A stretch of DNA of 64,000 bases, from NCBI GenBank assembly GCA_020536535.1, contig JAHLWZ010000530.1, positions 158,384 through 222,383 of the forward strand, written 5' to 3'. This document shows, one piece after another, positions 22,560 through 51,902 of this stretch (position 1 is the first letter of the stretch; every line of letters begins with the position of its first letter). The notes below the pieces were generated by a model that worked only from the letters and a program-made list of their open reading frames with translations, was not told the origin of the DNA and did no database searches. This stretch comes from Pelomyxa schiedti (Eukaryota > Protista > Evosea). A program made the position numbers and the translations under genes.

Positions 22560-25500
22560 GGGCCGTGGGCGTGGTTCTGGGCCGCGTTTGGCGGCGAGTC
22601 CGACAAACTGGCCGTCCTGCTGGAACGGGACTCAGGCCTCATCGATTCGGTGAACGACGGGAATCAAAAAGTGGTGCGTGCGTGTGCCATGTGGGTCTGT
22701 GCACCGTTGTGTTTTGCTTAAGCTTATTTATGAATATGAACTGAACACTCACTAAAATTGGTAAATGGCAGTAGAACTTTACTTACTTGCGTTTTTTTAC
22801 AAACTAAACGACCAGACTGCATTGCATGCGGCTGTGTGCGGTGCGTCGAGTTTCTGTTGTCGGCGCACATCAAAGTCGGTGCCCAGGTTTGTTGTGTTCT
22901 CTCCGGCTCATCACTAAACAATGGTATCATCACACAGATTGTGTGTACAAATCCCCGATATGTGTTCTCGTTTACTCTCCACTTTGACATTCACATTCAT
23001 CTTCTTAAATGAAAAACTAAAACCCAAATCCCTCCCTGTGCCATCCCCAGGGTAAAAATGTAAGTATACTACTATCTTCCGCTCAGATCTATTTTTTCAT
23101 GATTTTCCCTCTCTTGCTTGGGCCTTGGTGCGCTTTCAGGGAGAGGTAACTGCCCCAGACAACCATATTTTTGCATGATTCACCAATTTCTCACTCTCTT
23201 TCAGGTTAATGGAGTATGTTTGTTCTCCACCATCTGAATTATTCATAAATTTCTCACTCACTTCAATTTCCCTTATACTCTGGCCTTGGTGGGCTTTTAG
23301 ATTGTGTGTACCTGCCCGCACCCTATTTCGCATGCAAATTCGTCAATTTCACCAATTTCCCTCTTTTGCCTTGGTGCGCTTTTAGTATGTGCGTGTTCCT
23401 GCCCCATCTTGTATTGCACGATTCATCAATTTCTCACTTTTGCTTTCAGGGAGTATGTTAACTGCCCCCAACCCTATTTTGCCTGATTGGCCAATTTCTC
23501 ACTTGCTTTAATTTCCCTCTTTCATGTTCAGGGAGTATGTCACTGCACCCCAACCCTATTTTGCATTGTTTGATCACTTTTCTTTCTCTCTTTTGCTTTT
23601 CCTTGGCCCGCTTTTAGCTTGTGTGTGATAGGCCAAACCTATGTTGCCTAATTCGAAAATTTTTCAGGGAGTATGTTTCTGCTGCCCCTATTTCACTTTA
23701 TTAGAAGTAGTTTTTCGCTAACTGCGATTTCTCTCTTGTACTTTCCCTTGGTGCGCTTTTAGTATGTGTGTAACTGATCACAATCCTATTTCGCCAATTT
23801 CTCACTCACTTCAATTTCTCTCTTTCGCGTTCAGGGAGTATGTATACACTTCCCCTCAGCCCTATTTTGCCTGATTCATCATTTTGGATATATTATAATC
23901 TGTATGATCTGCATGATCCCACGGATTGTATGCACTTTCGAGCATGTTCATTTTACTTACTTTTGAACTTGCGCAGGAAGTATGAGTTTCTTTTATTGAT
24001 GCCTTGACTTATTTGTTTTCTTGGGTGCTCTCTTTTTTTATCCAAAGGGTGACGTACGTATCCAATTACTTTTTTGTATGCGTTGGCAACTAACAGTAAT
24101 TTTCATCTCTGTCAGACCGCACTTCACCTTGCCTGCAGAAACGGAAAGGTACAAATTGTGAGACAAATTCTCTCATCTGCGGGTGTTGACACTCACATCA
24201 AGGTTTCTTTCCCCCCTTTGACTGTGTGTGGGTTCTGTGCTTTAATTTTCCTGTGTACTTCTGCCAGAACAAGGATGGAGAAACAGCACTCGAGTGCTCG
24301 ACAAGTGATGAAGTCCGGCAACTATTCCAAGCCATGTGTCCAGCCACACCAACAACAATAGCGCGGACAGTCTCCACTCCCAAGACACCACAACAGCAAC
24401 AGCCCCCACAACCACAACCACCCTCCGCTGCAAACAAGCCACCATCATCTTCATCATACAACTCCCCACAACCAACAATGACGGCGACAAAACCAACAAC
24501 AACACCAAACACAATCAGGACTAGCCAGGTGATCTCCAAAGCTCTTGAGGGAGGTTATGATGCCGGCAGCAGCAGCAACAACGTTGTTGAGAAACGAGAA
24601 AGAGACTTCTGGGAAATGACGGCAAAGCAGAAGAGTGAGAGAAACTCCCCCCTCTTTAAGTCAAACTGCACTCCTCACACTTTGTGTTAAGATGACGAGA
24701 TCACGGAACTGAAGGCGCGAATCACACAATTGGAGGATCTTCTCCATGATGAAAGGAAATGCAGACAAGTCGAGGAACAAACATACAATGAAATGAAACA
24801 ATTCTATGAAGATGAAAGTGCAAAGACCCTGAAAACCTTTTGCGATGAAAGAGCATATGACCAACAAAGATTTGTTGATCTCCAACACTGTTTGTGCCTC
24901 CACTCAACACCCCTTTTCTCAATAGACTACATTTTTTTTTACCATTCTGAGTGCCGAACAGACATTGAAAGCATGAATCACGTGACGTCACATTTTAAAC
25001 ACGGAGAAGGCGGCACCTGGTGCAACATTCTTCCTGAAAACAACAACAGCTGCAAACGGTCACAAATCAGCATTGCTTTTGAGAACCTTTCCCCTTTTAA
25101 TGAAATTGTGTGCAGTTTCTGCCCTCTTCAAATGGTGCTTTCCTCGTTCTCTCACTTTCTGAAAGTCAACAAACGCACACAGGTTGTGAACTTCATAATT
25201 TCAAGGAAGTTTGGAGTCGAACCGACTCAGCAAGTCATTTTCACTGTGGGTACAGATAACTCGGAGGAACTGTTGACAGATTCATCCAGAACCTTGGATG
25301 ACAGACAACAACAGCAACAAGGCAGCGCAGTTGTTGTGTCAATCAAGGTGCGAATCAAACCAATCACATTAATACAAGAGAAAGACCTGAAAGTTGTTTC
25401 AACACTTGGAGTTGGATCTTATGGAACCGTTTTCAAGTACACCTTCCTCCACAACACCGCCGCCACTTCCTCCTCCTCATCGGAACCAACAACAACAACA

Positions 25501-27053
25501 TTCGTTGCAGTGAAAGCACTTCATGAAGTCATTCGGAGTGATTTCAACATCACCCAATTTCAGCAGGAAGCTGTGGTGAGTGAGTGAGTGAGAGAGAAAC
25601 CTTAAACAACCAATCAAACAAAAATAGATGACTCACCATACTGTAATCCAGATTTCGTCAAGTTTGAGGCACCCCAACATCGTGAGATGCCTTGGAACGT
25701 GCACAACAAGCACTGGGTCACTCTTGATTGTCTCTGAGCTCATGGAAATGAACCTGACGCAGCTCCTCCATCATGTTCCTCCTTCTTTCACAATCTTGGG
25801 GAATTAATTGTTGGTGCCTTTGCAGAAAAGTTTGATGTTCACAGAAATTGTTGCAGTCTCTTCAGGAATTTCCAAAGGGATGGCTGCACTTCACTTGTTT
25901 GTTTTCTTTCCCCTGATAAGTTTCACAAATGCATGAACTCATGGAAACACAGGAGGAATTACATGCACCGGGACCTGACATGCAACAACGTTCTCATTGA
26001 TTCTCATGGAACTCCGAAAATCGCTGATTTTGGTATCCTCCTCTTTCCTCTTCAATATAAATAGGTTCATGAAATGACTGACATGTTCACAGGAGTGTCA
26101 AGAGCTCTCCCAAGTTACGCTGAGTCTTATGGTGGTGGCCACCGCATCACCCCAGCTGTTAGTTTTACAAACGGGGCCGGCACACTAAATTATCTGCCAC
26201 CACAGATGCACACCCGTCACTACGGACTCAAAGGGGTGTGTCTGTCTCTGTTTTCTCTCATGGTGGCACCAATTCTGACCAAACAACACAATGCCTGCCA
26301 CAGGTGACATGTGGGAGTTTGCAGTCTTGTTGGGTGTGCTTCTCGATGTGCCAATACCACAAGTGCGCGAACCGAAGTCCGCGAACGAAATAACCGAGTT
26401 TTTGGCGGTCCAACGAGCTTCACTCTCCTCATCCGAAGTTGCCGGTTCGTTTGTTAACTCGAATGAATCATTTATGTATTGGCCGATAACTTACATGCAC
26501 ACACAGAATTGAACCGGCTTTGCCAAAGTGACCCTGGAGAACTTATTGTTGTGGGATGCCTCAGCCGGAGGAATGCCGTCATTTCTTCCTTGCGTTCTGA
26601 TCCCCGGATGGGCAACGTGCACCCTGCATGCGTTGGTCTGTTCTCACTCGTTGTCGAGTCGTGACTCTCGATCCTTGGTTCGTTTCTTCCCCCACCCACA
26701 AGCTCCAACTCATCACACACACAGAGAGCAACCGGCCGGCAATCGAGAGAATGCTGATGACATGTGCCGGCATCCTGTTTGAAGGTTCCACAACAACAAC
26801 CAACAACAACAGCATAAGCAACGATGACGCCATTGTTGTTGCAACAACCACGCAATCGGCATCCGCAGCGGCCACGGCACCCTCCACAACAACAACAACA
26901 ACGACGAGTGACAACCGCGAGTTGGCGGCACGCATCGCGGGGTGCCTCGCGGAAATGGCGGCGCAGAGCTTCCCTTGCCATCTCAATCCATCATCAACCA
27001 CAACAACATCACCAGTAACTGCTTCTGCTGCATCATCTTTCTTTTCATCATGA
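22560..27053 (+). pseudogene. K1: ankyrin (with micro-exon array)-coiled coil-ubiquitin-like-TKL kinase; 5' end apparently damaged
   Basis: Exon 1 GPWAWFWAAFGGESDKLAVLLERDSGLIDSVND matches U1/U3 but has no in-frame ATG. Exon 2 (22816-22886) is 71 nt versus 84 nt in paralogs, a frameshift. Downstream motifs TALHLACRNGK, LGVGSYGTVFK, VAVK, HRDLTCNN and ADFG. Confidence 0.65.
22887..24115 (+). other. Micro-exon array A (14 intact candidates plus 1 with a dead acceptor)
   Basis: ag|exon|gt at 22938 ATT, 23051 GGTAAAAAT, 23140 GGAGAG, 23205 GTTAATGGA, 23301 ATT, 23386 TAT, 23450 GGA, 23532 GGA, 23618 CTT, 23668 GGA, 23763 TAT, 23835 GGA, (23925 ATT with a cgg acceptor), 23977 GAA and 24048 GGTGAC. 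Confidence 0.8.
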
Positions 27054-27146
27054 CGACCAGACAGCCACCATGGCACCATCTCAACGAAAGCACAACCAAT
27101 CAAATCAATGATTGCAAGTTTTTATTTTTTTCGTCGACGAAACATC

Positions 27147-30100
27147 ATGACAACACACCAGCAGTGCGAGGAGTTGGGATTTGCGTGCTCGACTGGCACC
27201 ATGCCCGAGTTGCCGTCACCCACGTGGGACATCAACACCCCCATCGACGGTAGTTGGACCATGCTCCACATCGCGTGCTATTACGGGAACGAGTCGGTTG
27301 TTGGGCAGCTCCTTGGTGTGGTGGGTGCCTCACGCAGCCCCCCAATCGACCCAAACAAAACCGACAGCCATGGCCGAACGCCGCTGTGTTACGCTGCTTG
27401 CCAGGGCCACGAAGCAGTGGTGAGGATGTTGGTGGCAAGACCCAATGTGGATGTGAACAAGGGGTGCCCACTGGTCGAGGCATGTAGTAATCACCGCATG
27501 AAGGTGGTGGTGGCGTTGCTTGAGTGCCCACGTGTGGCCGTCAACTTGTTGCAAACAGCAGGAGACCAGCAGTCACACAAGGGTCAAACAGCACTGCACA
27601 TGGCCTGCGAAATGAGATTCGTGAAAGGGGTGAAGGTTCTGCTCCAGGTAAATGGAGTTGACACAAACCGCAAAAACATCAATGGTGAAACACCACTTGA
27701 TGTGGCAACAAGAAGGAAGGTTTCAGATGGCAAATACACTGATATATGCAACCTCTTGAAGGATCACAACGCGAGAATTATTCAATCCTCAAGCCACACG
27801 TTACCGCCACCACAACCACAATCACAACCCACAGCAACCACGATGACAGAAACGGTTCCAACTGCCACCAGGACCGCCACCAGCAATGTGGTGTCCAAAG
27901 CTCTTGGCATCATTGACAGCAGTAACAACTGGGAAATCGCTGCAGAGCAGCAGAAGAGTAACCCTTCCTCCATTGTGCCACACACCTCACTCACACTTTG
28001 TGTTGAAAAGGAGAAATCACAGAACTGAATGCACGAATCACACAATTGGAGGATGAAAACGCAAAGAACCTGAAGCTTCTCCATGATGAAAGAAAATATA
28101 GACAGAATTCAGAGGTGTGTGTTTGCTGGTCTTATGACGGATTCGTCGATAGTAATAACCTCTTTTGACAATGCATTCCACAGATGGAACTCCAAAGGGT
28201 GCAAGAAAAAAACGTGTTGGACATGACTGCAAAGAACAACGGTTTTTTGACACACCTTTTCTCCTCCTCCTTTTTCTCTTGTTTTGAATTCAAAAGTGAA
28301 CTCAAAACCCTTTTTTTCCCCTTCTTCCAAACACAGAAATCATGGAACTGGAGGCCCTTATAACAACATTGGAGGAAGAAAGTGCCAAGAACCTGAAGAT
28401 CTTTTGTGATGCAAGAGAGTTTTCACAACAAAGATCTTGTGATCTCCAACAGTGTATGTGCTCACAAGATCCTCTTTTTCAACCAACCACATCACCATGC
28501 TTCATTCTAACTTTAAAGCAGGCATGAATCACATGATGTCACATTTTGAACAAGGAGAAGGCACATGGTGCAACATTCTTCCTGAAAACAACAAAAGCTG
28601 CAAGAGATCACAAATCAGGATTGCATTTGAGGATTTTCCCTCTTTTGAGGAAATTGTGTGTGCCTTCTGTCCTCTTCAAATGGTATGTGACTGTGCTCTC
28701 CTTTGGCATTTCCCCCCACCCCCCCCCCCCCCCTTTGTTGTTGTTGTGATGTTGGTCACTGGCTGGGTGCATGGAAAAATAACGAGACAAACAAACACAG
28801 GTTGCAAAGATTGTAATCTCAAAGAAGTTTGGAATTGAACTGGCCCAACAAGTGATTTTCATTGTTGGCCCAGGAAACAACAACTCTGATGAGGAACTGC
28901 TGACGGATTCGTCCAGAACCTTGGATGACATTCAAAAACTACAACAACAAGAAGGAAGCAGCAGCACAAACATAGCAGTTCAAATCAAAGTTCGAATCAA
29001 ATCAAGCATGACAATACAAGAGAAAGACCTGAAAGTTGTTTCGACACTTGGAGTTGGATCGTACGGAACTGTTTTCAAGTGCTCCTTCCTTCACAACGTG
29101 GCCACCCCTTCATCATCATCAGAAGCAACGACAACAACGTTTGTGGCAGTGAAAGCACTTCACGAAATCATCAGATCAGAGTCAAACATCACACGATTCC
29201 AGCAGGAAGCTCTGGTGAGTGCCACCCTGTGTTTGAAAACAAATTCATTCATCCACTCACCATCTCACCAGATTTCATCAAGCTTGAGGCATCCCAACAT
29301 TGTGAGATGCCTTGGAACGTGCATTTGCACGAGCACAGGGTCACTCTGGATCGTCTCTGAACTCATGGAAATGAGCCTCAGGCAGCTCCTCCGTCATGTT
29401 TGTTTTCCTCCTCCCACTTTGAAAACATATGAACATTCAACAAACACAATCAGAAAGATTTGACATTCACAGAAGTTGTTGCAGTTTCTTCGGGAATTGC
29501 CAAGGGGATGACTGCACTTCACAGGTTTCAATCTTTCTGTTTTTTCTTTTGCTTGTCAAACCCACAACATCAACTCTAATTTTTCCCAATACGAAAAATG
29601 GATTTGCAACAAAAACACAGGAGGAACTACATGCACCGGGACCTGAGCAGCAACAATGTCCTCTTGGATTCTCATGGAACTCCGAAAATAACTGACTTTG
29701 GTACTTTCTCCAACTGCATACACATAATCTCAACTCAAAACTCTGAAGGAGTGTCGAGAGCCATTCAGGGTCAAATCGGCCGTGGGAGTGTGCCACCTAT
29801 GATTGGGAGTTATTCAAAAGGGGCCGGAACCCCGATTTACTTATCACCACAGATGCACACCGGGCACTACGGAATCCAAGGTATGCGGATGGCGTTCATC
29901 CTGTTGATATCACTCAATACTAATTCCACACACACATATATAATTCAAAAGGGGACATTTGGGAGTTTGCAGTTTTGTTGAGTGAACTTCTTCAACGCGA
30001 AGTTCCGTCGGTACAAATGCCAAAGTCCGGTGCCCAAGTCACAGAATTTGTGAGAGTTCAGAGGGCTTCACTCTCACCCCTTGAAATTGCCGGTTTGTTG

Positions 30101-30598
30101 TCAGCAACAACCACAATACAAAAGGTGCTCTCTGACTCACACACAACACAGAAGTGGACCGGCTTTGCAATGACGTTGGAGACATTCCCGTTGCTGAGTG
30201 CCTCGGCCGGAGGCTCGCAATCATCTCCGCGTTGCGATCCGATCCCAAGATGAACAACAACGTGCACCGTGCGTGCGTTGGTCTGTTCTCTCTCGTTGTT
30301 GAGTCCTGCCTCTCCATCCTCGGTTCGTTTTCCTTTCCGTCCTCACCCTCACTCACTGACTTACTCCCACAACCACACACAAATCCACACGCGCACAGAG
30401 ATCGACCGGCCGTCATTCCCGGCGATTGACAAAGTGTTGATGATGTGCGCCGAGATCGTGTTCACCACCAATTCCAGACCAAGCCCGTCGACCAACAGCA
30501 CTCCCACAAGTGACAACGACGTGATGGGGCACATCACCAAGTGCCTCGAGAACATCGCAGCAACTACGTTCCAAGACCACTGCAATCGCACAGAGTGA
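27147..30598 (+). CDS. K2: ankyrin-coiled coil-ubiquitin-like-TKL kinase (multi-exon)
   Basis: Ankyrin motifs (TMLHIAC, GRTPLCYAA, GQTALHMAC, GETPLDVA), heptad exons and a UBL-like segment ISKKFGIELAQQVIF...DSSRTLDDI. Kinase motifs GVGSYG, VAVK, HPNIV, HRDLSSNN and TDFG. Confidence 0.85.
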
Positions 30599-30905
30599 GG
30601 ACTGGCCTGCCGCCAATGAGCAGCGGTGCGTGCGGCCTGCATCCATTGTAGTCTCTGAGTGGTGCGGGTGGTCTTTTTCACAATAATCAACGGGAGGGGA
30701 GAATTTGGGAGCTCTCAATTGTTGGTAAATGGCTGAACAAAAAAAAACACCGGACCGCCGATCCTGAGCGACGGTAACGAAAATGCCAGCGTTCCGGTCC
30801 GTTGATTATTTGATTCAAAGGGCTGATTGTTAGTGGCTTCCCCTAACCATCAAAAAGCGACCATAGGCGTTATTACGCACCGCCGGCCAAACGTCATCAC
30901 CCACA

Positions 30906-33900
30906 ATGACAACACCACTGTCACACCATCAGTGCGTGGCCATGCGATTTGCGTGCGAGCGTGGTGAGATGCCCGAGTTGCCGCCGTCGCCCACGTGGGA
31001 CATCAACACCCCCATCGACGGTGGTTTGACCCTGCTCCACATCGCGTGCTACTGCGGCCGCGAGTCGGTCGTCGGCCAGCTCCTCGGCGCGGCCGGCGCG
31101 TCGCGCCGCCCCCCGATCGACCCGAACTCGACGGACAGCTACGGCCGAACCCCGCTGTGTCACGCCGCCCGCGAGGGCAAGGAGGCAGTGGTGAAGATGC
31201 TGGTGGCGAGACCAGACGTGGACGTGAACAAGGGGTGCCCGCTGGTCGAGGCGTGTGGGGTGCCGCTCATGGGCGTGGTGGTGGCGCTGCTCGAGTGCCC
31301 TCGGGTGGACGTCAACTTGGTGCAGACGGCAGGCGACGAGAGGTCTCACAGGGGCCAAACGGCACTGCACGTGGCCTGCGGAATGAGGTTCGTGAAAGGG
31401 GTGAAGGTGCTGCTCCAGGTCAATGGAATTGACACGAACCGCAAAAACATCAAGGGCGAAACACCACTTGATGTGGCAACAAGAAGGAAGGTTTCAGATG
31501 GCAAATTCACTGAAATATGCAACCTCTTGAATGATCACAATGCGAGAATTATTCAATCCTCAAGCCACACCTTACCACCACCACAACCACCACCCACCGG
31601 CAATGTACTGTCCAAAGCTCTTGACATCATTGGCAGTAACAATGATGGGAAACAAGAAAGAAACTGGGAAATCACCGTAATGCAGCAGAGGAGTAACCCC
31701 CCAAATCAAATTTAACTTGGTACACACACCTCACTCACACTTTGTGTTCAAAAGGAGAAATCAGAGAACTGAATGCCCGAATCACACAATTGGAGGATGA
31801 AAACTCAAAGAACCTGAAGCTTCTCCAGGAGGAAAGACAACTCCACAAAAAGACTCTTCTTGACTCAACTTTGAAGAACAAGGGTTTTAACCCTTTCTCT
31901 CCTCTTCTCTCACCCCCAAAAAAAAGAGCTGATGGCACTGATCTCCACACTGGAGGAAGAAAGTGCCAAGAACCTGAAGCTTCTCCATGAAGAAAGAAAA
32001 TGCAGACAGGTCGACCAACAAAGGTTTTGTGAACTGCAACAGAACTGTTTGTGCTCCCCCACTCCTCCTTTTCTTCCTTCCTTTTTCTCCCTTCAGGCTT
32101 TGCTTCTTCTCTTTTAGATTCTGACACCTGTTCTCATATCAAGGGAAACAGAATTCAGAAGTGTGTGTTTGTTGTTTGTCTTATAACAATGGGTCCTACA
32201 ATAATAATGAAACACATTCCCTCCACAGATGGAACTCCAAAGGTTGCAAGAAAAACACATGATGGACATGACCGCAAAGAACAACGGTTTTTTGACACCT
32301 CCTTTTTCTCTTTCTTTGTTAAAATTCAGGAAAGTGAACTCATTGGTTCACCCTCAAACTCTTTTTTCCCTTCTTCCAAACACAGAAGTCACGGAACTGG
32401 AGGCCTTCATAACAACATTGGAGGAAGAAAGTGCAAAGAACCTGAAGATCTTTTGTGATGAAAGAGAGTTTTCACAACAAAGATCTCATGATCTCCAACA
32501 CTGTTTGTCCCTCTTTTTCGACAAACCACACATTCATAACACCATGCCACACTCTTCTTCATTCTAACTGTAAAGCAGGTATGAATCACATGATTTCACA
32601 TGTTGAACAAGGAGAAGGCATGTGGTGTGACATTCTTCCTGAAAACAACAACTGCAAGAGATCACAAATCAGGATTGCATTTGAGGATCTTCCCTCTTTT
32701 GAGGAAATTGTGTGTGGCCTCTGTCCTCTTCAAATGGTATGTGACCGTGCTCCTACTTTGAGATATTGGTCACTGGCTGGGTGCGTGGGAAAATAACGAG
32801 ACAAACAAACACAGGTCGCAAAGATTGTCATCTCAAAGAAGTTTGGAATTGAACCAGCTCAACAACTCATTTTCATTGTTGGCCCAGGAAACAACAACTC
32901 TGATGAGGAACTGCTGACAGATTCATCCAGAACCTTGGATGACATTCAAAAACGACAACAACAAGGCAACATCAGCAGCAGCACAAGCAGAGATGTTGTT
33001 CAAATCAAGGTTCGAATCAAATCAAGCATGACAATACAAGAGAAAGACCTGAAACTTATTTCGACACTTGGAGTTGGGTCTTATGGAACTGTTTTCAAGT
33101 GCTCCTTCCTTCACAGCACAACCCCCTCTTCCTCATCATCATCAACAACAACAACGTTTGTGGCAGTGAAAGCACTTCACGAAATCATCAGATCAGAGTC
33201 AAACATCACACGATTTCAGCAGGAAGCTCTGGTGAGAGAGTTTCCCTCTATGACCCTGTGTTTGAAAACAAATTCATTCACCCACTCACCATCTCACCAA
33301 CACACACGCCAGATTTCATCAAGCTTGAGACATCCCAACATTGTGAGATGCCTTGGAACGTGCATTTGCACGAGCACCGGGTCACTCTGGATCGTCTCTG
33401 AACTCATGGAAATGAGCCTCAGGCAGCTCCTCCGTCATGTTTGTTTTCCTCCTCCCACTTTTGAAAAGATATGAACATTCGACAACGCAATCAGAAAGAT
33501 TTGACATTCACAGAAGTTGTTGCAGTTTCTTCAGGAATTGCCAAAGGGATGACTGCACTTCACAGGTTTTCAATTTCTGTTTTTTCTTTTGCTTGTCAAA
33601 CACACAACATCAACTCCAATTTGTCCCAATAAATAAAATGGATTTGCAACAAAAACACAGGAGGAACTACATGCACCGGGACCTGAGCAGCAACAATGTC
33701 CTCTTGGATTCTCATGGAACTCCAAAAATAACTGACTTTGGTACTTTCTCCAACTGCCTACACATAATCTCAACTCAAACCTCTGAAGGAGTGTCGAGAG
33801 CCATTCAGGGTCAAACCGGCCGTGGGAATGTGCCACCTATGATTGGGAGTTTTTCAAAAGGGGCCGGAACCCCGATTTACTTGTCACCACAGATGCACAC

Positions 33901-34638
33901 CGGGCACTACGGAATTCAAGGTATGGGGATGGTGTTAATCCTGTTGATATCACTCAATACTAATTCCACACACACATATATATAATTCACAAGGGGACAT
34001 TTGGGAGTTTGCGGTCTTGTTGAGTGAACTTCTTCAACGCGAAGTTCCGTCGATACAAATGCCAAAGTCCGGTGCCCAAGTGACAGAATTTATGAGGCTC
34101 CAGAGGGCATCGCTCTCACCTCCGGAAATTGCCGGTTTGTTGTCAATAAGAATACACTCTCTCTGACTCACACACATCACGCACAGAAGTGGACCGTCTT
34201 TGCAATGACGTTGGAGACATTCCCGTTGCTGAGTGCCTCGGCCGGAGGATCGCAATCATCTCCGCGTTGCGAACCGATCCCAAGATGAACAACAACAACG
34301 TGCACCGTGCATGTGTTGGTCTGTTCTCTCTCGTTGTTGAATCCTGCCTCTCGATCCTCGGTTCGTTTTTCTTTTCCCATTCCGTCCCTCACTTACTCCC
34401 ACAACCACCAGAGATCGACCGGCCGTCATTCCCGGCGATTGACAAGGTGTTGATGACGTGCGCCGAGATCGTGTTCACCACCAATCCCAGACCAAGCCCG
34501 TCGACCAACAACAACAATAACGACGACGACGTGATGGGGCACATCACCAGGTCCCTCGCGAACATCGCGGCAACAACATTCCCAGGTCGCCGCAATCGCA
34601 CAGAACCAACGACTGCCGTTCCTCTTGGTCACACATAG
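30906..34638 (+). CDS. K3: ankyrin-coiled coil-ubiquitin-like-TKL kinase (close paralog of K2)
   Basis: Same motifs and intron positions as K2, with an extra coiled-coil exon. Confidence 0.85.
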
Positions 34639-34732
34639 TGAGGACCCGCCCCCAATGAGCAGTGGTGAGAGAGCGTCCCTCAGTTTGTCTTCCCTTCCCA
34701 ATTGAGAGAACATCTTCATCTTCATCTTTGGC

Positions 34733-34946: not shown

Positions 34947-35001
34947 ATCCATAACAGTCACTACTTTTTTCCTCTACTACCAACCTGCCCACTGAGAGAG
35001 G

Positions 35002-41300: not shown

Positions 41301-42384
41301 AAAGCAGCAACTTGATGACTCCAGAAAGCTCACTTCCACCATCAGCCGGAACATCTCCATGGTGCAGGAAAAGCAACAGGCACTCGAGTGCAAATTGAAT
41401 TCTGCGCGAAAGGTGCTGACCTCTCTGAGCCAGAAAGCAAGCACGCGAAACTTGTTGCAGTTTAACGTTGAGGATATCGGATGCTTGCTCCGTTACTTGG
41501 GCCTTCAGAATCATGCTGAAAAGTTCTGCTTGAATCAAGTTGATGGCGAAGTATTTCTGGAACTGAACAAGGCGGGACTTGAGGAACTTGGGGTGACTGA
41601 GAGAGCGGAGCAGGACCTTCTTTTCCACACAAGGGCAATGATAAAGAACTGCGGTGCAATTCGCACACCATCAATTGCCTCTGACGTTGGCACCAAGGCT
41701 GCTGCTGCGTCATGGGATGTGAACGGAGTTGCAAGCTGGTTGGAATCACAAGGAATACCTCCCGAAGCCGTCACGTGGTTCCGCGAGAAGGGAATAACAG
41801 GAATCTCGTTGCTTTACATGGAAGCCCAAGAAGTAAGCAGTGTTCCGGGTCTCCCATTTGGACTCCGGCACAAGCTCCTCAAGCGAATTGAAGAGCTCAA
41901 ATCCGAGGTCTATACTCCAAGGAATCTCCATGTGCCTTCATCCTCCGGTTTGTGTTTCACCCCTTACTTACACACAAACAACAACAAAAAACCTTACACC
42001 TTATCACTGATCAAACAATCAAGGACCTGGTAAAACAGCAGCGGACCCAGCACAATCGAGCATTCCTTTTGCGGAAGCTACCGGAGGGCATCGTTCTTCT
42101 GTTCCGGCACCGCTTGAATACCTTTGCTCAATCACCGGTGACTTGATGGACACTCCCGTTGTTGCTGCCGACGGGTGTGTGCTCTGCCAACCGTTCACAA
42201 GTTCCTGTGTTGCTAACAGACGATCCAAAGATACTGTTATGAGAAGAGCGCGATTGAGGAGTGGCTGAGCAAGCACAACACATCGCCGATGACCAACAGT
42301 GTTCTTCCCAACGAAGCGTTGGTGGTGTGTCACACCCTCCGCACTTCAATTCTCGACTGGAAGAATGCCAACAACATTCCATAA
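38382..42384 (+). CDS. U1: ankyrin (with micro-exon array)-coiled coil-SAM-SAM-U-box protein (putative E3 ligase)
   Basis: Ankyrin exons TALHAAAWGGNPQCVEFLL and TALHLAAKNGN. SAM domains FNVEDIGCLLRYLGL...VDGEVFLEL and WDVNGVASWLES...GITGISLL...GLRHKLL. U-box PLEYLCSITGDLMDTPVVAADGYCYEKSAIEEWLSKHNTSPMTN. Confidence 0.88.
38770..40606 (+). other. Micro-exon array B (19 candidates, 17 single-codon)
   Basis: 38830 ATT, 38917 GGTGCACCT, 39026 GAT, 39125 GAT, 39225 GGA, 39319 CAT, 39417 TAT, 39507 TCT, 39606 TAT, 39706 GGA, 39792 ATT, 39951 TAT, 40054 ATC, 40108 GGA, 40192 ATT, 40337 GGA, 40412 ACT, 40474 GAA and 40553 GGTGAT. Each is flanked by ag and gt(g/a)(t/c)g. Confidence 0.85.
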
Positions 42385-42438
42385 ACCCCAACACATCGCA
42401 CGTTCCATAAACCCCCACCAACATCTTCATCTTCATCT

Positions 42439-43945
42439 ACACCGGGGCCGAATCAAATGAGAAAAACAGAATTTTTTAGTAAGCAAGCAGGGTGAATCGA
42501 TTTTGCCGGGATTTGTTGATGTTTTGTGCCGCGGGGCGGTTGGCGCGGCGCCGCGGCAGGGCAGCGCGGCGTGTGTGTTCGTTGAATCGGGTCTTGTGTT
42601 GTCTATTCCATCACGTCGTTCCATCTAATATCTAATTGTTTTATTTCTGGACGTGTTTGTTTCAATTAAAGTAAATTAAATTAATGTCATTTAATTTAAT
42701 TTTTAATTGTTTATTATTAATTTAATTAAAATTAATTTTTTACACCTTTACGACTTGTATTAGGCCTACAGCATTGCCTCACCCCTTGTATGTATTTCCG
42801 TGCCTTTTTCCACTGGTATGTGGCTTCTTGTTTCTTTGTTTTCTTTTTCCCAGTAGATAACTATCATTCCAGCGGGCAAGGTAAATTCCATCTGTTCTTT
42901 CAGCACTGGGACACTGGAATGCTTTTTTTTTTTTTTTTTACACTTAGGTGGTCAACTTTCCTGCCACTGCTGACATGACAACCACTGACATCCTTCTACT
43001 TTTTTGTCATTGCTAAACAGTTGTAGGTACCGGACCAACCCCAACTTCCCTTACCCACTCTCCCCCGCTTTTCCGCTTTCCAACTACCACACTTTACTGT
43101 GACGGGTGCACAACCAGGCCCAAATTTCCCTTCTTACTCTTTCACTCTCATGTGTACCCACAACGCCCACTTCTCTCCAAAATGTGGATTTAAAAAAAGG
43201 TGGCACGATTTTTTATCCAAGGACTTAAGGGGGGAGGGATGTACGTTGGCGGTTGCCATCTGGGCAGCTGGCGCAGCTGTAAAAAAAAACCTACATACCA
43301 CCGTGCCAGTACGGGATTATAGACACCACGTCCGGCACCTAAATTATCCTACGTGAGAAAACGAAGAAAGAAGAAGCCACATACTGGCGGAAAGCGGAGA
43401 CTTCTAATACAGGTTGAAAGCGGCGTAAAAACTGGTGTAATGCGGAGACTTCTAATACAGGTCGAATGGAAAAAAGAACTGGAGGCGTAATTAATAATAT
43501 ATAATATATTATTAATTAATACGCATATATAACCATTAAATTTAATTTATTATTATATAATAAATTAAATTTTTAATAATAATGGTTAATACATTTAAAA
43601 TTTGTACATTCAAAATTTAATTTGTATTTAAATAATTAAATAAATAAAATCAAAAACACCACTCCGATAAATAAAATAATAAACAAGCAAACAGAACAGT
43701 TGTGGCTAAGAAGACAACAAAAAGCAAATGGGAGAGTACCGCTTGCTCCTCTTCACCCCAGGGCGGCATGGCCTCCCCTCGTCGATTTCTTTTGTGATAA
43801 TGAAAAGACACAAGCCACTGCACAATCACCAAAACCCATTTATGTCAAGGCCGCGCAGCCGCGGCGAGACCCGAGCTACCGGCCAAGCTAACATAAGTCT
43901 ACACCCTTTTCTAAAGGTCACCTCCATCCAAGCGCGTTTTCCACA
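42439..43945. mobile_element. Putative 1.5-kb non-coding insertion flanked by the 8-bp direct repeat CTTCATCT
   Basis: Absent from the homologous K3-K4 spacer. CTTCATCT lies at 42431-42438 and 43946-43953. Composition is mirror-like (GC, AT, core, AT, GC) but there is no clear TIR. Confidence 0.4.
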
Positions 43946-43978
43946 CTTCATCTTTAGATCTACCCAACCTGCCAAGAG

Positions 43979-46769
43979 ATGGGCAACAACCCCAGCAACT
44001 TGCAATTGGGTCAGCAGCAGTACCAGGCCATGCTTGATGCGTGCCGGCGCGGTGACATGCCCGAGTTGCCGCCGTCACCCACGTGGGACATCAACACCCC
44101 CATCGATGGTACTTGGACCATGCTCCACATCGCGTGCTGGCAGGGGCACGAGTCGCTTGTCGGGCAGCTCCTTGGTGTGGGTGCGTCGCGCAACCCCCCA
44201 ATCGACCCAAACAAAACAAACAGACATGGTAGAACGCCACTGTGTTACGCTGCTCGTTGGGGCAAGGAGGCAGTGGTGAGGATGCTGGTGGCAAGATCCG
44301 ATGTGGATGTGAACAAGGCGGGCCCACTGGCCGAGGCATGTTTGTGGCAACGCATGGGTGTGGTGGTGGCGTTGCTTGAGTGCCCACGTGTGGACGTAAA
44401 CTTGATGGATAGTGGTCAAACAGCACTGCACGTGGCTTGTGAAAGGGGATTCGTGGAAGGGGTGAAGGTTCTTCTCCAGGTCAATGGAATTGACACAAAC
44501 TGCAAAAACAGCAAAGGTGAAACACCACTTGATGTGGCAAAAAGATGCAAATTCACTGATATATGCAACCTCTTGAAGGATCACGACTTGAGGTTTGCAC
44601 AATCTTCACAACTACAAGCACCACCCACATCAACAACAATGACAGAAACGGCCCCAACCACCAGAAAAACCACCAGTAATGTGATCACAGAGGTCATGCC
44701 AGATACCACTCATGTTATGTCACATGTTGAACAAGGAGAAGGCACGTGGCGCAACATTCTCCCTGAAAACAGCAACAACAACAACAACAACAACTGCAAG
44801 CGATCACAAGTCAGGATTTATTTTGAGGATCTCCCCTCATTTGATGAAATTGTGTGTGGCCTCTGTCCTCTTCAAATGGTACGACGTTCCTCCCCCTTTG
44901 AATTGAAACTCTCCTCTCTTTCTCCTGGAAACAAATTCAACGAACACAGGTTGTGAAGCTTATCATCTCAAGGAAGTTTGGAGTCGAACCAACTCAACAG
45001 CTCATTTTCACTGTTGGAGCAGAACATAACTCGGAGGAACTGTTGACAGATTCATCCATAACCTTGGATGACATTCAACAACAGCACAAAGGCAGCGGAG
45101 TTGTTGTGTCACTCAAGGTGCGAATCAAATCAACCACCACAATAGAAGAGAAAGACCTGAAAGTTGTTTCCCAACTCGGAGTTGGCTCTTATGGAACTGT
45201 TTTCAAGTGCTCCTTGCTACACAACACTTCCCCCTCCTCATCATCAGAACCAACAACAACCACAACATTCGTTGCCGTGAAGGCACTTCATGAACTCATT
45301 CGGAGTGATTTCAACGTCACCCAATTTCAGCAGGAAGCTGTGGTGAGTGAGTGAGAGAGAAAGCTTAAACAACCACTCAAAACCAAAAAATAGTCATTGA
45401 CTCACCAACACACAAACATCCCATCCAGATTTCATCAAGTTTGAGGCACCCCAACATCGTGAGATGCCTTGGAACGTGCACAACAAGCACAGGGTCACTC
45501 TTGATTGTCTATGAGCTCATGGAAATGAGCCTGACGCAGCTCCTCCATCATGTTTTTTTGTTCCTTCTTTCGTAATCTTGTGGAATTAATTGTTGGTGCC
45601 TTTGCAGAAAAGTTTGATGTTCACAGAAATTGTTGCAATCTCTTTAGGAATTTCCAAAGGAATGGCTGCACTTCACTTGTTTGTTTCCTTTCCCCCAATT
45701 TGGGTTTTTTTCGAGTTTCACAAATGCATGAATTCATTGGGGACACAGGAGGAATTACATGCACCGGGACCTGACATGCAACAACGTTCTCATTGATTCT
45801 CATGGAACTCCAAAGCTTGCTGATTTTGGTTCCTCCTCCCTCGTCAATAAGCAGGATGGTCAATCTTTTTTTTTTTTTGCAGGAGTGTCGAGAGCTCTCA
45901 GGAGTTCTTCTGGTGACCACCGCATCACAGTACCTCCTGTTAGTTTCACAGACAACGCTGGCACAATGATTTACCTGCCACCACAGATGCACACTCGTCA
46001 CTACGGACTTAAAGGTGCGTATGTATGTTTTCTCTCTGGTCGTGATGTTGCCACACGATGGATTCTGACAAACAACACAATGCTCTGCCACAGGTGACAT
46101 GTGGGAGTTCGCGGTCTTGTTGAGTGTACTTCTCAATGGAACAAAACCAGAAGTGAGTCCACTGAAGTCTGCGAGTGCAGTAACCCAGTTTCTGGAGGTT
46201 CAACGGACTTCACTCTCCTCATCTGAAGTTGCCGGTTCGTTTGTTCACTCGAATCATATTGCCGACAACTTACACCTGCACACACAGAATTGAACCGGCT
46301 TTGCCAAAGTGATCCTGGAGAACTTGTTGTTGTGGAGTGCCTCAGCCGGAGGAATGCAATCATTTCTTCCTTGCGTTCTGATCCAAAGTTGAACATCATT
46401 CACCCTGCGTGCGTTGCTCAGTTCTCACTCGTTGTCGAGTCGTGCCTCTCGATCCTCGGTTCGTTCCTTCCCCCACCCACACTCTTTCGCAATCTCCAAC
46501 TCAACAAACACACAGAGAGCAACCGGCCGTCATTCCCGGCAATCGAGAGAATGCTGATGACATGTGCCGGTATCCTCTTTGAAGGGTCCACCACAACCAC
46601 GCAATCGGCATCCACCGCTGCCACGGCACCCTCAGCAACAACGATAAGTGACAACCGGGACTTGGCCGCACGCATCGCGGGGTGCCTCGAAGAGATGGCG
46701 GCGAGCTTCCCTTGCCATCTCAATCCATCATCAACCACAACTGCTGCGTCATCTTTCTTATCGTCATAA
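43979..46769 (+). CDS. K5: ankyrin-ubiquitin-like-TKL kinase lacking the coiled-coil exons
   Basis: Close paralog of K4. The ankyrin region runs in frame straight into the UBL-like segment, the N-terminus is MGNNPS, and kinase motifs are intact. Confidence 0.85.
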
Positions 46770-46975
46770 TCCCCCCACCAACCCAACACCGTAACGCATT
46801 ATCATCATCAACGAAGGCACAACCACTATCTCTTCGCCTTATTGAGAGTCTCTCACACAAACGAGGAACTCACGCACCTCTTTTAACCTGACTTTTACCA
46901 TTCTCAGAAAAAAGGGCGGAATCATTCTGTGTCCATCACAACGTGATGGGTTACCCCTTCCAAGTGATCAACAAC

Positions 46976-49065
46976 ATGGCAGCAACAACAGCATCTACAT
47001 CGTTCAACCAGGCGGCCGTTGCGCAAGTGGTTCAGTGCCGCGTATCGATTTCCGAAATATATGGCGAAATCGAGGCACTGCGTGCAATGTTGGCCCGCGA
47101 CCCCGGCCTCCTGAACTCCATGAACGACCAACAACAACGAGCGGTGTGCAAAAACAAAATAATAAACCTAACACAGTGCGTTGAATTCCTATTATCGGTG
47201 GATGTCAATGTCAGCTCCCAGGTTTCTTTTTGTCTTTGATGTACAGCCCACACTCACAAGCTTGTACCTCTCACTTTACAGATTGTGTGTGATATCCCTT
47301 CCTGATTTTATGTTTACATTTCCCATTCCTCTAAAAACCGTAAATCCTATATGTACAGCCACTCTCTCAATCCTTTTTGAATTATTCATCAATTCCTCTG
47401 ACTTGCTTCAATTCACTCCTTGCTTTGCTCTGTGTGGCGTGTTTAGGATGTAACTGCTCCCCCCAACCCTTTTTATGCTGTTCATCGATATCTCTGACTT
47501 GCTTCTATTTCCTTCCTTTCTGCACTCCCATCAATTGATGCATCAATTTCACTGACTTACTTCGATGTTCACTCCTTGCTTTGTTCTGTCTGGCGTGTTT
47601 TGGCATGTGTGTAACCGCACCCTTTGAAATTGCATTGTTCACCAATTTCTCTTGTTTCAATATTCACTTCTTGCTTCCCTCGATCTGGCGTGTTTAGTAT
47701 GTGTGTAACTTTTCCTACAACCCTTTCATGTTGCATTACTCACCGATTTCTCTTTTTGCTTTTCTCTGTCTGACATGTTTAGATTGTGTGTAACTGCCCA
47801 CCCCAAAACCCTATGAATTAATTAAGTTGCGTTATTCACCCTATTAATTAAATTGATTAAATTGACGCAATTCACCAATTTCTTATTTGCTTCTATCTTT
47901 CTCTCTTGTTTCACTCTATATGGCGTGTTTAGTATGTGTGTAACTGCCCCCTCCCAACCCATTTTTATTGCGTCATTCACTGACTTTCTTCAATTTCACA
48001 CCCTCCTTGCTTTGCTCTCTGTCTGCTGTATTTAGATCGTGTGTGACTGTGTTTCTTCCCCCCAAACCCCTTTTTACATTATTCACCAATTCCTTCACTT
48101 TCACTCTGTGTGTCCCTCCGTGACGTGTTTAGATTGTGCGTAACTGATTCCCCCCATCCCTTTTATGAATTTCATCCATTTCCTTTCTTTGCATCATGAC
48201 ACTTTATCTCATATATCGTATTGTGGGGGTTCCTTTCAGAAAGTATTACCTTTTTTTCTTGTTGTATTCTGAACTTATATATTCATCTTATATTTTCTTG
48301 GGGCTCTCTTTTGAATGAAAGGGAGATGTGTGTGTCTTTCCTTTCTCCGTTGTTTGACACAAATTCAATTAGACTGCGCTTCACCTTGCCGCCAAAAACG
48401 GAAATGTTGCAGTTGGAAAAAACTTCTATCTTGTGTGGGTATTGACACTCGCATCAAGGTTGTTTTCCCCTGCTGTTTGATTGATATGTGTTGTAATTTT
48501 CCTGTTGGGCACAGAACAAGGAGGAAAAACACCTTTCAAGTGCTCCATGAGTTAGTCCGGCAACTGTTAAAATCTGTGCGTCACACAGTCACCACTCCAA
48601 GGAATCTCCATGTGCCTTCATCCTCCAGTTTGTGTTTCACCCCTTACTTACACACAAACAACAACAAAAAAACCTTACACCTTATCACTGATAAAACAAT
48701 CAAGGACCTGTTAAAACAGCAGCGGACCCAGCACAATCGAGCATTCCTTTTGCGGAAGCTACCGGAGGGCATCGTTCTTCTGTTCCGGCACCGCTTGAAT
48801 ACCTTTGCTCAATCACCGGTGACTTGATGGACACTCCCGTTGTTGCTGCCGACGGGTGTGTGCTCTGCCAACCGTTCACAAGTTCCTGTGTTGCTAACAG
48901 ACGATCCAAAGATACTGTTATGAGAAGAGCGCGATTGAGGAGTGGCTGAGCAAGCACAACACATCGCCGATGACCAACAGTGTTCTTCCCAACGAAGCGT
49001 TGGTGGTGTGTCACACCCTCCGCACTGCCATTCTCGACTGGAAGCAAGCCAACAACGTTCCATAA
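46976..49065 (+). pseudogene. U2: degenerate copy of U1
   Basis: A 14-nt insertion near 47048, loss of the TALHAAAWGG segment, and deletion of the whole coiled-coil/SAM region at about 48597. The U-box exons are nearly identical to U1. Confidence 0.8.
47222..48372 (+). other. Micro-exon array C (eroded copy of B; 9 intact candidates plus 1 with a dead acceptor)
   Basis: 47282 ATT, 47447 GAT, (47604 CAT with a gg acceptor), 47698 TAT, 47783 ATT, 47933 TAT, 48036 ATC, 48133 ATT, 48240 AAA and 48322 GGAGAT. Confidence 0.75.
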
Positions 49066-49234
49066 ACCCCCCCACTCCCACCAACACATCACACAAAGAC
49101 CCATCCACACCTTCCTCAAAGAGCGGCACAGAGAACGAAAGCGAAAGAGAGGGTTCCGGTAATTTTCTCCGCCAATCATTGTCCCACAACAGGCAAACAG
49201 CCAACAAACAAAAAAAAAAATAGAAACACCCCCC

Positions 49235-51902
49235 ATGGCAACAACAACAAAGCCACAGATCGGACCCTATGAGTGGTTCGAGGCCGCGTCTGATGGCAAC
49301 ATCGACGCGCTGCAGCGCAAGCTGGGCAGCTACATAGATATACTAAACTCTATAAACCACGAAGAACAGCGAGTGGTGCGTGTGATGCGGAGCTTGCCTT
49401 TTTTTTTTTTTTTTTTGTTTCCCCTACCACGGTGACAGCAATTCGTTTCTCACACACACAAAATAGACAGCGTTGCACGCGGCCACGTGGTCAGGGCAAG
49501 CACGGTGCGTTGAGTTCCTGTTGTCATTGCATGCCGATGCCAATTGTCAGGTATTCCCTTAATTTTGATGTCTTCTCCGCACTCACCAACTTGTAACCCT
49601 CTCTACTTCACAGATTGTGCGTTATACTATCCAGATTATATTTACATTACCCTTTCCTCTAAAAACCTAAATCCTGAAATACTTCTCCACCAGGGTGTGC
49701 CTGTATGTACTGCCACTGCTCTCCATCCTTTTTATTGTGTTGTTATTCATCAATTTCGCTGACTTGCTTCAATTTCTCCTCTTTGCTTTGCTCTCTGTGA
49801 TAAACTCAGGGAGTGCGTAACTTCTCCCACCCCTTTTTATTGTGTTATTCATCAATTTTCTCTCCTCTCTGCTTTTTGCTCTGTCCGGCATGTTCAGTAT
49901 GTGTGTAACTTTGCTCCCAACCCTTTTTATTGCGTTATGCATCAATTTCACTGACTTCCTTCAATTTTCTCTCCTCTTTCCTTTTTCTCTGTCCGGCGTG
50001 TTTAGTATGTGCGTAACTTGCTCCCAACGGTTTTATTGTGTGATTCATCAACTTTTCTCTCCTCTTTGCTTTCAGGGAGTGCGTAACATCCCAACCCTTT
50101 TTATTGCGTTATTCATCAACTGATTTTCTCTCCTCTTTACTTTTGCTCTGTCTGGCGTGTTTAGAATGTGTGTACCTTTCTCCCACCCCTTTTATTGCGT
50201 TATTCATCATATTTCACTTCAATTTCTTGTGATACTTTACCTAATTTTTCTCACCCATTATTGGACAATAATTGGATACTTTTATTGCCATCAGGGAGTA
50301 AGTAAAAACCCTCCCTTCCAGCTTCTTGTTCTAACTTTTCGGGATGTTTTACTATTTTGAACTACCAGATTGTATGAACTCTCACCTTGATTCTTTCTTT
50401 CCTTAACTCTTTATTTTTAGGAAGTATGAGCTTTTTCTTTTTGTTGTCTTCCTCTATCTTATCTTTTCGTGGGGGTGTCTCTTTCAAATGAAAGGGTGAT
50501 GTACGTGACTGCCCTTTGTTTTATTTCCTTTAATTTTCATCTTCTCTTTCTCAGACCGCGCTTCACATTGCCTGCAGAAATGGAAATGTTGAAATTGTGA
50601 AACAACTTGTGGGTGCTGGGACTCACATCAAGGTTTGTTTTCCCCTGTGTTGATTGATATGCTTGTAATTTTCCCGTTGTTGCACAGAACAAGGAGGGAA
50701 AAACCGCTATCGAGTACTGCAAGAATGATGAAGTACGGCAACTGTTCCAATCTGCGAGTGTCACAGTCCCTGCTTCCACAGCAACAGAAACAACAACAAC
50801 AACAGATCAACAACCACCCATCACCATTACCACCCTTGAACAACTCCACAATCTCGTCGCTCATGATTTATTGTCTTCATTCTCACTGCCTCCATCATCC
50901 ACAGCACAATTGGAGACACCTTCCACAGTTCTGTCCAAAGCCACTGAAGATGGCATCAACAACCTTGGGAAACAAGGCCCAACCATGGAGGCATCGGTTC
51001 TGATGCTGGTCAGTGACCAGTTGTCACAAACCCTGTCAGCTCTCCTTGACCAGCAGAAAGTGCACCAAGCCAATGCCGAAAAGGTTGCCGTGCAAGTTGA
51101 AGCCACAGAGAAGCAAATGGCACCGGCACAGGAACTGGTTCAAGAACTGGAGTGCAAGCTCGTGCAAGCAAGGCAACTTCTTGGCGAAACAACACAGGCC
51201 AACACGCTGGCAAAGAAGCAACTTGATGACTCCAGAAACCTCGCAGCCACCATCAGCCGGAACATCTCCATGGTGCAGGAAAAGCAGCAGGCGCTCGAGT
51301 GCAAATTGGCCTCTGTTCGCCAGGTTCTGACCTCTCTGAGCCAGAAAGCAAGCACGCGAAACTTGCTGCAGTTTAACGTTGAGGACATCGGGTGCTTGCT
51401 CCGTGACCTGGGCCTTCAGAATCACGCTGAAAGGTTCTGTACGAACGCAGTTGATGGTGAGGTCTTGCTGGAACTGAACACAGCGGGACTTGAGGAGCTT
51501 GGGGTGACTGAGAGAGCAGAGCAGGAACTTCTTTTCCACACAAGGGAAATGATCAAGAAATGCGGCGCAATTCGCACGCCATCCAAGCCCGCTGCATCGT
51601 GGGACGTGAACGAGGTTGCGAGCTGGTTGGAATCACAAGGGATACCTCCCGAATCCGTCACGTGGTTCCGCGAGAAGGGAATAACAGGAATCTCGTTGCT
51701 TTCCATGGAGGCACAAGAAATAAGCAGTGTTCCGGGTCTCCCATTTGGACTCCGGCACAAGCTCCTCAAGCGAATTGAAGAGCTCAAGGCTTCATCCTCT
51801 GGTTTCTTCCACCGCTCATGATGATATAATACATATATAACCATTTTTCACTGATCCAACAATCAAGGACCCAGTCAAACAGCAGTGAGCAACGTTCCAT
51901 AA
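49235..51902 (+). CDS. U3: ankyrin (with micro-exon array)-coiled coil-SAM-SAM protein without a U-box
   Basis: MATTTKPQIGPYEWFEAASDG, TALHAATWSGQARCVEFLL and TALHIACRNGN. The coiled coil and SAM domains are near-identical to U1. The last exon is GPSQTAVSNVP*. Confidence 0.82.
49551..50554 (+). other. Micro-exon array D (11 candidates, 9 single-codon)
   Basis: 49614 ATT, 49694 GGTGTGCCT, 49810 GGA, 49898 TAT, 50006 TAT, 50076 GGA, 50165 AAT, 50295 GGA, 50369 ATT, 50421 GAA and 50495 GGTGAT. Confidence 0.85.

Follow-up and report, generated by a model that had tools for sequence, protein, structure and literature searches.

Arrays of putative single-codon exons in an ankyrin-repeat gene family of the archamoeba Pelomyxa schiedti

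Four arrays and their host genes

Pelomyxa schiedti is an anaerobic archamoeba (Amoebozoa) that harbors prokaryotic endosymbionts. The 64,000-nucleotide stretch of DNA analyzed here (hereafter the window; positions are counted from its first letter) was assigned by sequence match to positions 158384-222383 of contig C530 of the P. schiedti assembly, and the large exon of one of its genes (gene B) is 100% identical to NCBI model Pelo_6819 of this species. The window is eukaryotic in character, with short GT-AG introns. Within it, four genes (A to D) carry arrays of candidate micro-exons, most of them a single codon long, next to exons that encode ankyrin (ANK) repeats. The P. schiedti genome is a single-cell assembly annotated with Augustus, PASA, and EVM, and it is rich in introns (7.43 per gene; PMC8887013).

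The window was scanned with the pattern yAG-(N3)1-3-GT, and each border was then verified base by base. Regular rows of matches occur in four plus-strand stretches only, at the places where an earlier note on this DNA had put the arrays.

Array A, 22887-24115, plus strand: 14 candidate micro-exons, old and diverged (flank diversity, approximately 0.56)
Array A micro-exons, first half, plus strand: 22938-40 I; 23051-59 GKN; 23140-45 GE; 23205-13 VNG; 23301-03 I; 23386-88 Y; 23450-52 G
Array A micro-exons, second half, plus strand: 23532-34 G; 23618-20 L; 23668-70 G; 23763-65 Y; 23835-37 G; 23977-79 E; 24048-53 GD
Array B, 38770-40606, plus strand: intact; 19 micro-exons; full inclusion would give 66 nt, 22 residues
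Array B micro-exons 1-7, plus strand: 38830-32 I; 38917-25 GAP; 39026-28 D; 39125-27 D; 39225-27 G; 39319-21 H; 39417-19 Y
Array B micro-exons 8-13, plus strand: 39507-09 S; 39606-08 Y; 39706-08 G; 39792-94 I; 39951-53 Y; 40054-56 I
Array B micro-exons 14-19, plus strand: 40108-10 G; 40192-94 I; 40337-39 G; 40412-14 T; 40474-76 E; 40553-58 GD
Array C, 47222-48372, plus strand: 9 candidates, inside a decayed copy of gene B
Array C candidates, plus strand: 47282-84 I; 47447-49 D; 47698-700 Y; 47783-85 I; 47933-35 Y; 48036-38 I; 48133-35 I; 48240-42 K; 48322-27 GD
Array D, 49551-50554, plus strand: intact; 11 micro-exons; full inclusion would give 42 nt, 14 residues
Array D micro-exons 1-6, plus strand: 49614-16 I; 49694-702 GVP; 49810-12 G; 49898-900 Y; 50006-08 Y; 50076-78 G
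Array D micro-exons 7-11, plus strand: 50165-67 N; 50295-97 G; 50369-71 I; 50421-23 E; 50495-500 GD

The base-by-base reading gave the same count as the earlier note, i.e., 53 candidates (14 in array A, 19 in B, 9 in C, and 11 in D), of which 44 are 3 nt long and the others 6 or 9 nt, with no stop codon among them. This lack of stops carries little weight, since 235 of the 313 triplets of the family end in T. The introns separating the candidates measure 47 to 156 nt (48 to 156 nt in array B). The earlier note had every unit ending in AG-NNN-GT; at the penultimate ATT of array A, however, the AG was lost (cGG), and the GD exons are preceded by an AAG acceptor, not YAG. An extra match in array D (LL, at 50322) was rejected; its donor is weak, and it falls within the conserved G-to-I intron.

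The narrower pattern yAG-N3-GTrnG has 42 plus-strand matches within the arrays (5.2 kb) and 7 in the remaining 58.8 kb of that strand, which makes it approximately 68-fold denser in the arrays; the minus strand of the arrays contains no match. When the length of the spacer was varied, spacers of 0, 1, 2, 4, 6, 7, and 8 nt gave 0 to 1 matches, and multiples of 3 alone were enriched; the 4 matches obtained with a 5-nt spacer are an artifact of register shift in GTGTGT. Tandem Repeats Finder detected periods of approximately 99 and 292 nt in array B, with 75 to 79% identity.

The exons around the arrays are as follows.

Gene A ANK exon 2, 22816-22886, plus strand: TALH...Q type; 71 nt instead of 84 nt, frameshifted
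Gene A next ANK exon, 24116-24202, plus strand: TALHLACRNG...HIK, phase 0 start; a kinase-type tail then extends to approximately 27050
Gene B exon 1, 38382-38549, plus strand: ATG to ...QQQRV; N-terminal ANK cap; identical to NCBI Pelo_6818 (P0012)
Gene B exon 2, 38686-38769, plus strand: TALHAAAWGG...VNVSSQ; phase 0 end
Gene B next ANK exon, 40607-40693, plus strand: TALHLAAKNG...TRIK; phase 0 start; matches P0001 (Pelo_6819)
Gene B large exon, 40747-42027, plus strand: C-terminal ANK cap, coiled coil, and two SAM domains (SAM_1, SAM_2)
Gene B U-box exons, after the large exon to approximately 42385, plus strand: Pfam U-box
Gene D exon 1, 49235-49375, plus strand: ATG to ...EEQRV; matches P0013 (Pelo_6823)
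Gene D exon 2, 49467-49550, plus strand: TALHAATWSG...DANCQ; phase 0 end
Gene D next ANK exon, 50555-50632, plus strand: TALHIACRNG...THIK; phase 0 start; matches P0003
Gene D large exon, 50688-51818, plus strand: coiled coil and two SAM domains

Genes B and D share a layout composed of exon 1 (the N-terminal cap), an 84-nt exon 2, the array, an ANK exon of 78 to 87 nt, and a large coiled coil/SAM exon. The phase 0 borders proposed earlier were recovered, exon 2 ending in ...VNVSSQ in B and ...DANCQ in D, and the TALH exons starting at 40607, 50555, and 24116. The flanking exons match ANK profiles of Pfam, both in P0002 (Pelo_4155, a family member at another locus; Ank, 2.6e-14; Ank_2, 9.1e-15) and in P0003 (Ank, 1.8e-07). 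Two SAM domains followed by a U-box are present in gene B (P0001) and in P0002, and no U-box was detected by Pfam in gene D (P0003). Pfam detected no NACHT domain; the domains found are ANK, SAM_1, SAM_2, U-box, or kinase. The micro-exons correspond to one loop in proteins of approximately 600 aa with cytosolic-type domains.

The earlier note had counted four genes, and this part of its description stands for B and D, the only two that are intact. The host of array C is 96% identical to gene B and is a pseudogene copy of it. Its head has lost the 5' half of exon 2, has a 14-nt insertion in exon 1 and a deletion of the GAP micro-exon, and shows AG changed to GG at the H cassette; farther downstream, 1-nt and 4-nt deletions affect later exons, and a 1.08-kb deletion spans the coiled coil and SAM region. 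In gene A, exon 2 carries a 13-nt deletion relative to genes B and D and to two loci elsewhere in the genome (L001 and L006), and the upstream ATG is in a different frame from the conserved reading. Either the gene A head is pseudogenic or this part of the contig is misassembled. A kinase match was found in its tail at 25738-26061.

It had also been predicted that gene finders would miss the arrays, and the public models bear this out. NCBI splits gene B (38382-42385) into Pelo_6818 and Pelo_6819 and gene D (49235-51818) into Pelo_6823 and Pelo_6824. The 5' models of both genes finish with ...Q-I and then run into intron, and the N terminus of Pelo_6824 (approximately 80 residues) is translated array intron. 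In models Pelo_4155 and Pelo_4154, all 3-nt exons are skipped. Overall, the public models of most family members break at the arrays.

Position in the ankyrin fold and signatures of coding and splicing

The loop of Pelo_4155 (P0002) is annotated as Q-GMP-GD-TALH. In the Pfam alignments of this protein, the preceding ANK match closes with Q (Ank_2 profile, 89/90), and GD occupies positions 2-3 of the Ank profile. An AlphaFold model was computed from residues 1-130 of the public P0002 model, which contains the 5-residue loop; in the result (mean predicted local distance difference test score, 67.6), residues 73-86 form the loop and bridge joining the helix pairs 54-72 and 87-105. On the basis of the Pfam borders and this structural model, the array sits in the hairpin between two ankyrin repeats, where the final GD exon provides the G-x ahead of TALH, both points in accordance with the earlier proposal. 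In designed ankyrin repeat proteins, the inter-repeat hairpin is part of the randomized binding surface.

Codon-position diversity was calculated pairwise among the cassettes within each of 11 well-aligned arrays. It ranged from 0.52 to 0.80 at position 1 and from 0.34 to 0.73 at position 2 and was mostly 0 at position 3, while the mean diversity of the intron columns was 0.05 to 0.13 (0.28 in one array). Triplet positions 1 and 2 are 5 to 15 times as variable as position 3 and the introns, and they usually rank highest in variability among the approximately 90 to 100 columns of a cassette. The corresponding values in array B are 0.81, 0.57, and 0.29 for the three positions and 0.25 for the introns.

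Retention of splice sites was assessed in cassettes located by an intron motif that excluded the splice sites themselves. The pattern yAG-NNN-GTrnG was intact in 119 of the 130 cassettes, most exceptions being the last framework intron, which is built differently, and AG and GT also survive in arrays in which the units have diverged by approximately 50%. The 6-nt GD exon is invariant at the protein level in 17 arrays, with synonymous variants only (GGTGAT, GGTGAC, and GGAGAT), while adjacent intron bases vary. In the GxP exon, the first codon is GGT, GGG, or GGC (i.e., Gly is kept), and the middle codon is hypervariable. Triplets that would create an internal GT are nearly absent among the 235 NNT triplets (GTT, GGT, and AGT, 0; TGT, 2). 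These patterns fit translated codons under diversifying or purifying selection, and a noncoding minisatellite would not be expected to yield them. The hypervariable codon positions, the conserved splice sites, and the synonymous-only changes of the framework provide strong indirect evidence for reading the triplets as translated exons, as the earlier note had suggested.

The micro-exon introns begin with the donor GTGTGTAA, end in the acceptor TTYAG, and are 97 nt long at the median; in about half of them, CTGAC or CTTAC lies approximately 47 nt ahead of the acceptor. The donors of bona fide introns in these genes are GTGyG, which matches the micro-exon donor type, and the median lengths of these introns are 54 to 79 nt. 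Zero-length AG-GT sites were not found on the plus strand of the arrays, so that these are not a case of recursive splicing. Since the footprints of acceptor and donor overlap on a 3-nt exon, intron definition with sequential removal is the probable mode of splicing.

Genome-wide family of arrays

The head exons match dozens of loci in the P. schiedti genome. The genome scan proposed by the earlier note proved productive: a strict 14-base pattern around the triplet gave 154 genomic matches, compared with 3 for the reversed control, and the loci that were fetched contain at least 27 arrays with 4 to 27 candidates each. Wherever the flanks are inside the fetched stretch, the array lies between a CVEFLL exon and a TALH exon, and I - GxP ... 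G - I/T - E - GD is the frame common to all arrays. The arrays are distributed over more than 20 separate contigs, each with a unique codon order and conserved flanking exons. Residue counts in the pooled data are as follows: I, 55; Y, 41; G, 40; L, 28; D, 24; F, 23; H, 21; P, 15.

Paralogous arrays differ in the number, order, and codons of their cassettes. Arrays B and C are distinguished by a 290-nt in-register indel of exactly three cassettes, and array B itself holds an older 292-nt duplication, also equal to three cassettes. The exons and introns of the tandem paralogs Pelo_4155 and Pelo_4154 (loci L001 and L004) are almost identical, and the two genes differ chiefly in micro-exon codons (ATG/AAG, CTT/GAT, and GAA/CAA) and in swaps between two cassette types. 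Germline unequal recombination or conversion, together with selected codon substitutions, fits this pattern. Another decayed copy was observed at locus L012 (G000:C479:4992-8147), where a deletion starts just past the GKP micro-exon and ends halfway through the coiled-coil exon, which indicates high turnover in the array family.

Among the head-exon matches in the genome, no intron-less or retro-copied paralog showing a spliced loop was found; an apparent contiguous match on contig C161 is a read-through into the first intron and was discarded. A protein search with the head returned NCBI models of P. schiedti only and no transcript-derived proteins, and giant multi-ankyrin proteins dominated the matches in a search of representative proteins with the ANK head. 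In metagenome contigs, the search for related loci gave only generic ankyrin matches (30 to 37%) without arrays and no relatives; a search for contigs encoding Pelo_4155 or Pelo_16390 gave no match.

Candidate explanations, known systems, and neighboring genes

We consider it likely, given these sequence patterns, that the triplets are genuine one-codon exons (a few of them of two or three codons) that ordered splicing assembles into a germline-diversified hairpin loop. Each micro-exon would be flanked by a complete short intron, composed of a donor of the GTGTGTAA type, a branch-like box (CTGAC/CTTAC), a pyrimidine tract, and an acceptor of the form YAG. Ordered splicing would place a long loop, different in each paralog, in the hairpin that connects ankyrin repeats 2 and 3, with a predicted length of 22 residues in B and 14 in D and a composition rich in Gly, Tyr, Ile, and Asp. 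In the proposed scheme, small ANK heads are fused to signaling or effector tails (in B, a coiled coil and two SAM domains with a U-box E3 ligase; in D, the same tail with no U-box detected; in A, a kinase), and the cassettes form a variable core enclosed by a fixed frame, I - G-x-P ... G - I/T - E - GD. The repertoire would reside in the germline, where unequal recombination or conversion may add, remove, or swap "intron + codon" cassettes; introns of approximately 100 nt would serve as homology spacers, each cassette event would stay in frame, and codon positions 1 and 2 would be under diversifying selection. We infer that the micro-exons are incorporated into mRNA, that splicing proceeds sequentially by intron definition, and that the loop acts as a recognition surface.

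Several observations weigh against this interpretation. In two small, single-cell RNA runs (X1 and X2), only 18% and 11%, respectively, of the sampled words of 40701-50700 were present, and these were not localized. Exons of 3 nt force the footprints of U1 and U2AF to overlap, so that an ordered pathway has to be assumed. The GxP and GD exons alone suffice for a hairpin of canonical length, as in NCBI model Pelo_4155. Within the window, genes A and C are decayed, and the arrays have diverged, so that the selection contrast is weaker there than at other loci. Finally, one triplet of array L018 (G000:C219:9000-13450, minus strand), where it stands with cassettes for F, D, G, and R, is TGA; either this cassette is skipped or the copy is decaying.

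A different use of real micro-exons would be combinatorial inclusion, in which cassettes are skipped and each gene yields many loop isoforms at the RNA level, as in Dscam or truffle nank genes. Any subset of the micro-exons would preserve the frame, because all are in phase 0 and are multiples of 3, and skipping every triplet would leave a canonical 5-residue hairpin. For truffle nank genes, two papers report diversification through alternative splicing of codon-sized micro-exons (PMC9815663 and PMC4986451). Graded splice signals are not what the arrays present, however; nearly all cassettes have strong, near-identical ones, and the at least 27 germline arrays already supply diversity. We regard combinatorial skipping as unlikely. 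The same low probability applies to its possible consequence, a somatic, per-cell repertoire of ankyrin binders varied at one-residue resolution by stochastic or regulated skipping and wired to ubiquitin-ligase and kinase outputs. Were it true, it would constitute an RNA-level analogue of antibody complementarity-determining region diversification in a protist with prokaryotic endosymbionts.

The arrays might instead be intronic minisatellites, i.e., noncoding repeats with splice-like motifs, with an mRNA in which Q is followed by GxP, GD, and TALH or immediately by TALH, the triplets never being translated. Tandem repeats were confirmed, and GxP plus GD gives exactly the canonical ankyrin hairpin length, which is how the public models Pelo_4155 and Pelo_4154 are built. 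This explanation is nonetheless improbable in view of where the variation lies (on triplet positions 1 and 2, not on position 3 or the intron), the retention of AG and GT in 119 of 130 cassettes, including arrays diverged by approximately 50%, the avoidance of GT-creating triplets, and the near-identical paralogs that differ chiefly at the triplets. Moreover, public models generated with Augustus, PASA, and EVM mostly break at the arrays rather than model them. An artifact of assembly or amplification is very improbable: the genome does derive from single-cell data (multiple displacement amplification), and gene A has odd frame defects, but more than 20 separate contigs carry arrays with unique codon orders and conserved flanking exons, and two further runs of the same study contain approximately 61 to 62% of the sampled words of 40701-50700.

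If the triplets are spliced as one-codon exons, the arrays would be among the densest micro-exon structures known, with 19 consecutive exons in 1.8 kb in gene B and up to 27 elsewhere, and they would pose the question of how the spliceosome recognizes an acceptor and a donor 3 nt apart. The homology of the introns would let a binding loop gain, lose, or swap single residues, always in frame, which suggests an evolvability device. Since standard annotation breaks such genes (B and D are each represented by two NCBI models), families of this kind are probably under-reported.

The closest known counterparts are the nank (NACHT-ANK) genes of the truffle Tuber melanosporum, described as having "dozens of 3 bp mini-exons" (PMC9815663); two papers on these genes and their codon-sized mini-exons (PMC9815663 and PMC4986451) cite Iotti et al. 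2012, Fungal Biol 116:261. As these citing papers present them, and it is through them that the comparison is made, nank genes resemble the Pelomyxa family in having many 3-bp exons in ankyrin-repeat recognition domains, expanded and fast-evolving paralogs, and a proposed role in diversification. The Pelomyxa micro-exons also lie in a variable position of the ankyrin repeats, the inter-repeat hairpin, but all of them are stacked as a tandem cassette array in one hairpin. The truffle is an ascomycete, and its proteins carry NACHT, whereas Pelomyxa belongs to the Amoebozoa and has SAM and U-box or kinase tails. Alternative splicing is reported for truffle nank. Our literature search turned up no report of such arrays from Pelomyxa or any other amoeba, and in the literature covered, the single-codon ankyrin exon design has so far been reported only in the immune-like NACHT-ANK genes of truffles. 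Its independent appearance in an amoebozoan suggests that ankyrin hairpins have been recruited convergently as programmable recognition loops.

In the micro-exon genes of schistosomes, exons of 6 to 36 nt make up most of a secreted protein, and variation arises through exon skipping. These genes likewise have runs of symmetric, multiple-of-3 micro-exons that permit in-frame variation; the Pelomyxa exons differ in being mostly 3 nt long, in forming one loop of an intracellular multidomain protein, and in being repeats of one cassette. The cassettes of Dscam1 and protocadherins are whole half-domains and mutually exclusive. Tandem alternative coding units within one gene feed a recognition domain there as well, but the Pelomyxa units are single codons, additive, and probably all included. 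In fungal NOD-like receptors (HNWD and other WD, ANK, and TPR repeats), similar tandem units with a few hypervariable, positively selected positions are reshuffled by recombination (PMC9815663). The likeness consists of hypervariable positions in highly similar tandem units reshuffled by unequal crossing-over; the fungal unit is a whole protein repeat within an exon, whereas the Pelomyxa unit is an intron plus one codon, with the homology in noncoding sequence. Isolated 3-nt micro-exons of animals and plants have canonical splice sites and are often misannotated (PMC7821500 and PMC8831610); they occur singly, compared with up to 27 consecutive ones in Pelomyxa. Gene B shares the combination of SAM and U-box with WDSUB1-like proteins and has ANK repeats in place of WD40.

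The window also contains four tandem paralogs (27054-30600, 30867-34640, 34996-38120, and 43958-46800; plus strand), each with a single-exon, multi-repeat ankyrin head and a kinase tail and without arrays (Pfam: Ank_2, 1e-33; PK_Tyr_Ser-Thr). Gene A combines an array-type head with the tail of these ankyrin-kinase paralogs, which indicates that the two families exchanged heads. A conserved Cys/His-rich segment is present in gene A and the kinase paralogs (24950-25150, 28520-28700, 32560-32740, and 44700-44900; plus strand), with the motif H-F-x-x-G-E-G-x-W-C-N-I-L-P-E-N-N...C-K-R-S-Q...C-P-L-Q-M-V followed by a ubiquitin-like-looking stretch; the gene A piece of this segment gave no Pfam match. 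Directly upstream of gene A, on the opposite strand, is an 832-aa open frame of MORN repeats (20168-22663, minus strand; Pfam MORN, 5e-126, 11 stretches). Further repeat-protein genes of the window are located at 1571-2644 (plus strand), 8305-9840 (minus strand), and 60175-61638 (minus strand) and comprise an open frame with Sel1 repeats and two more ankyrin open frames, the latter on the minus strand.

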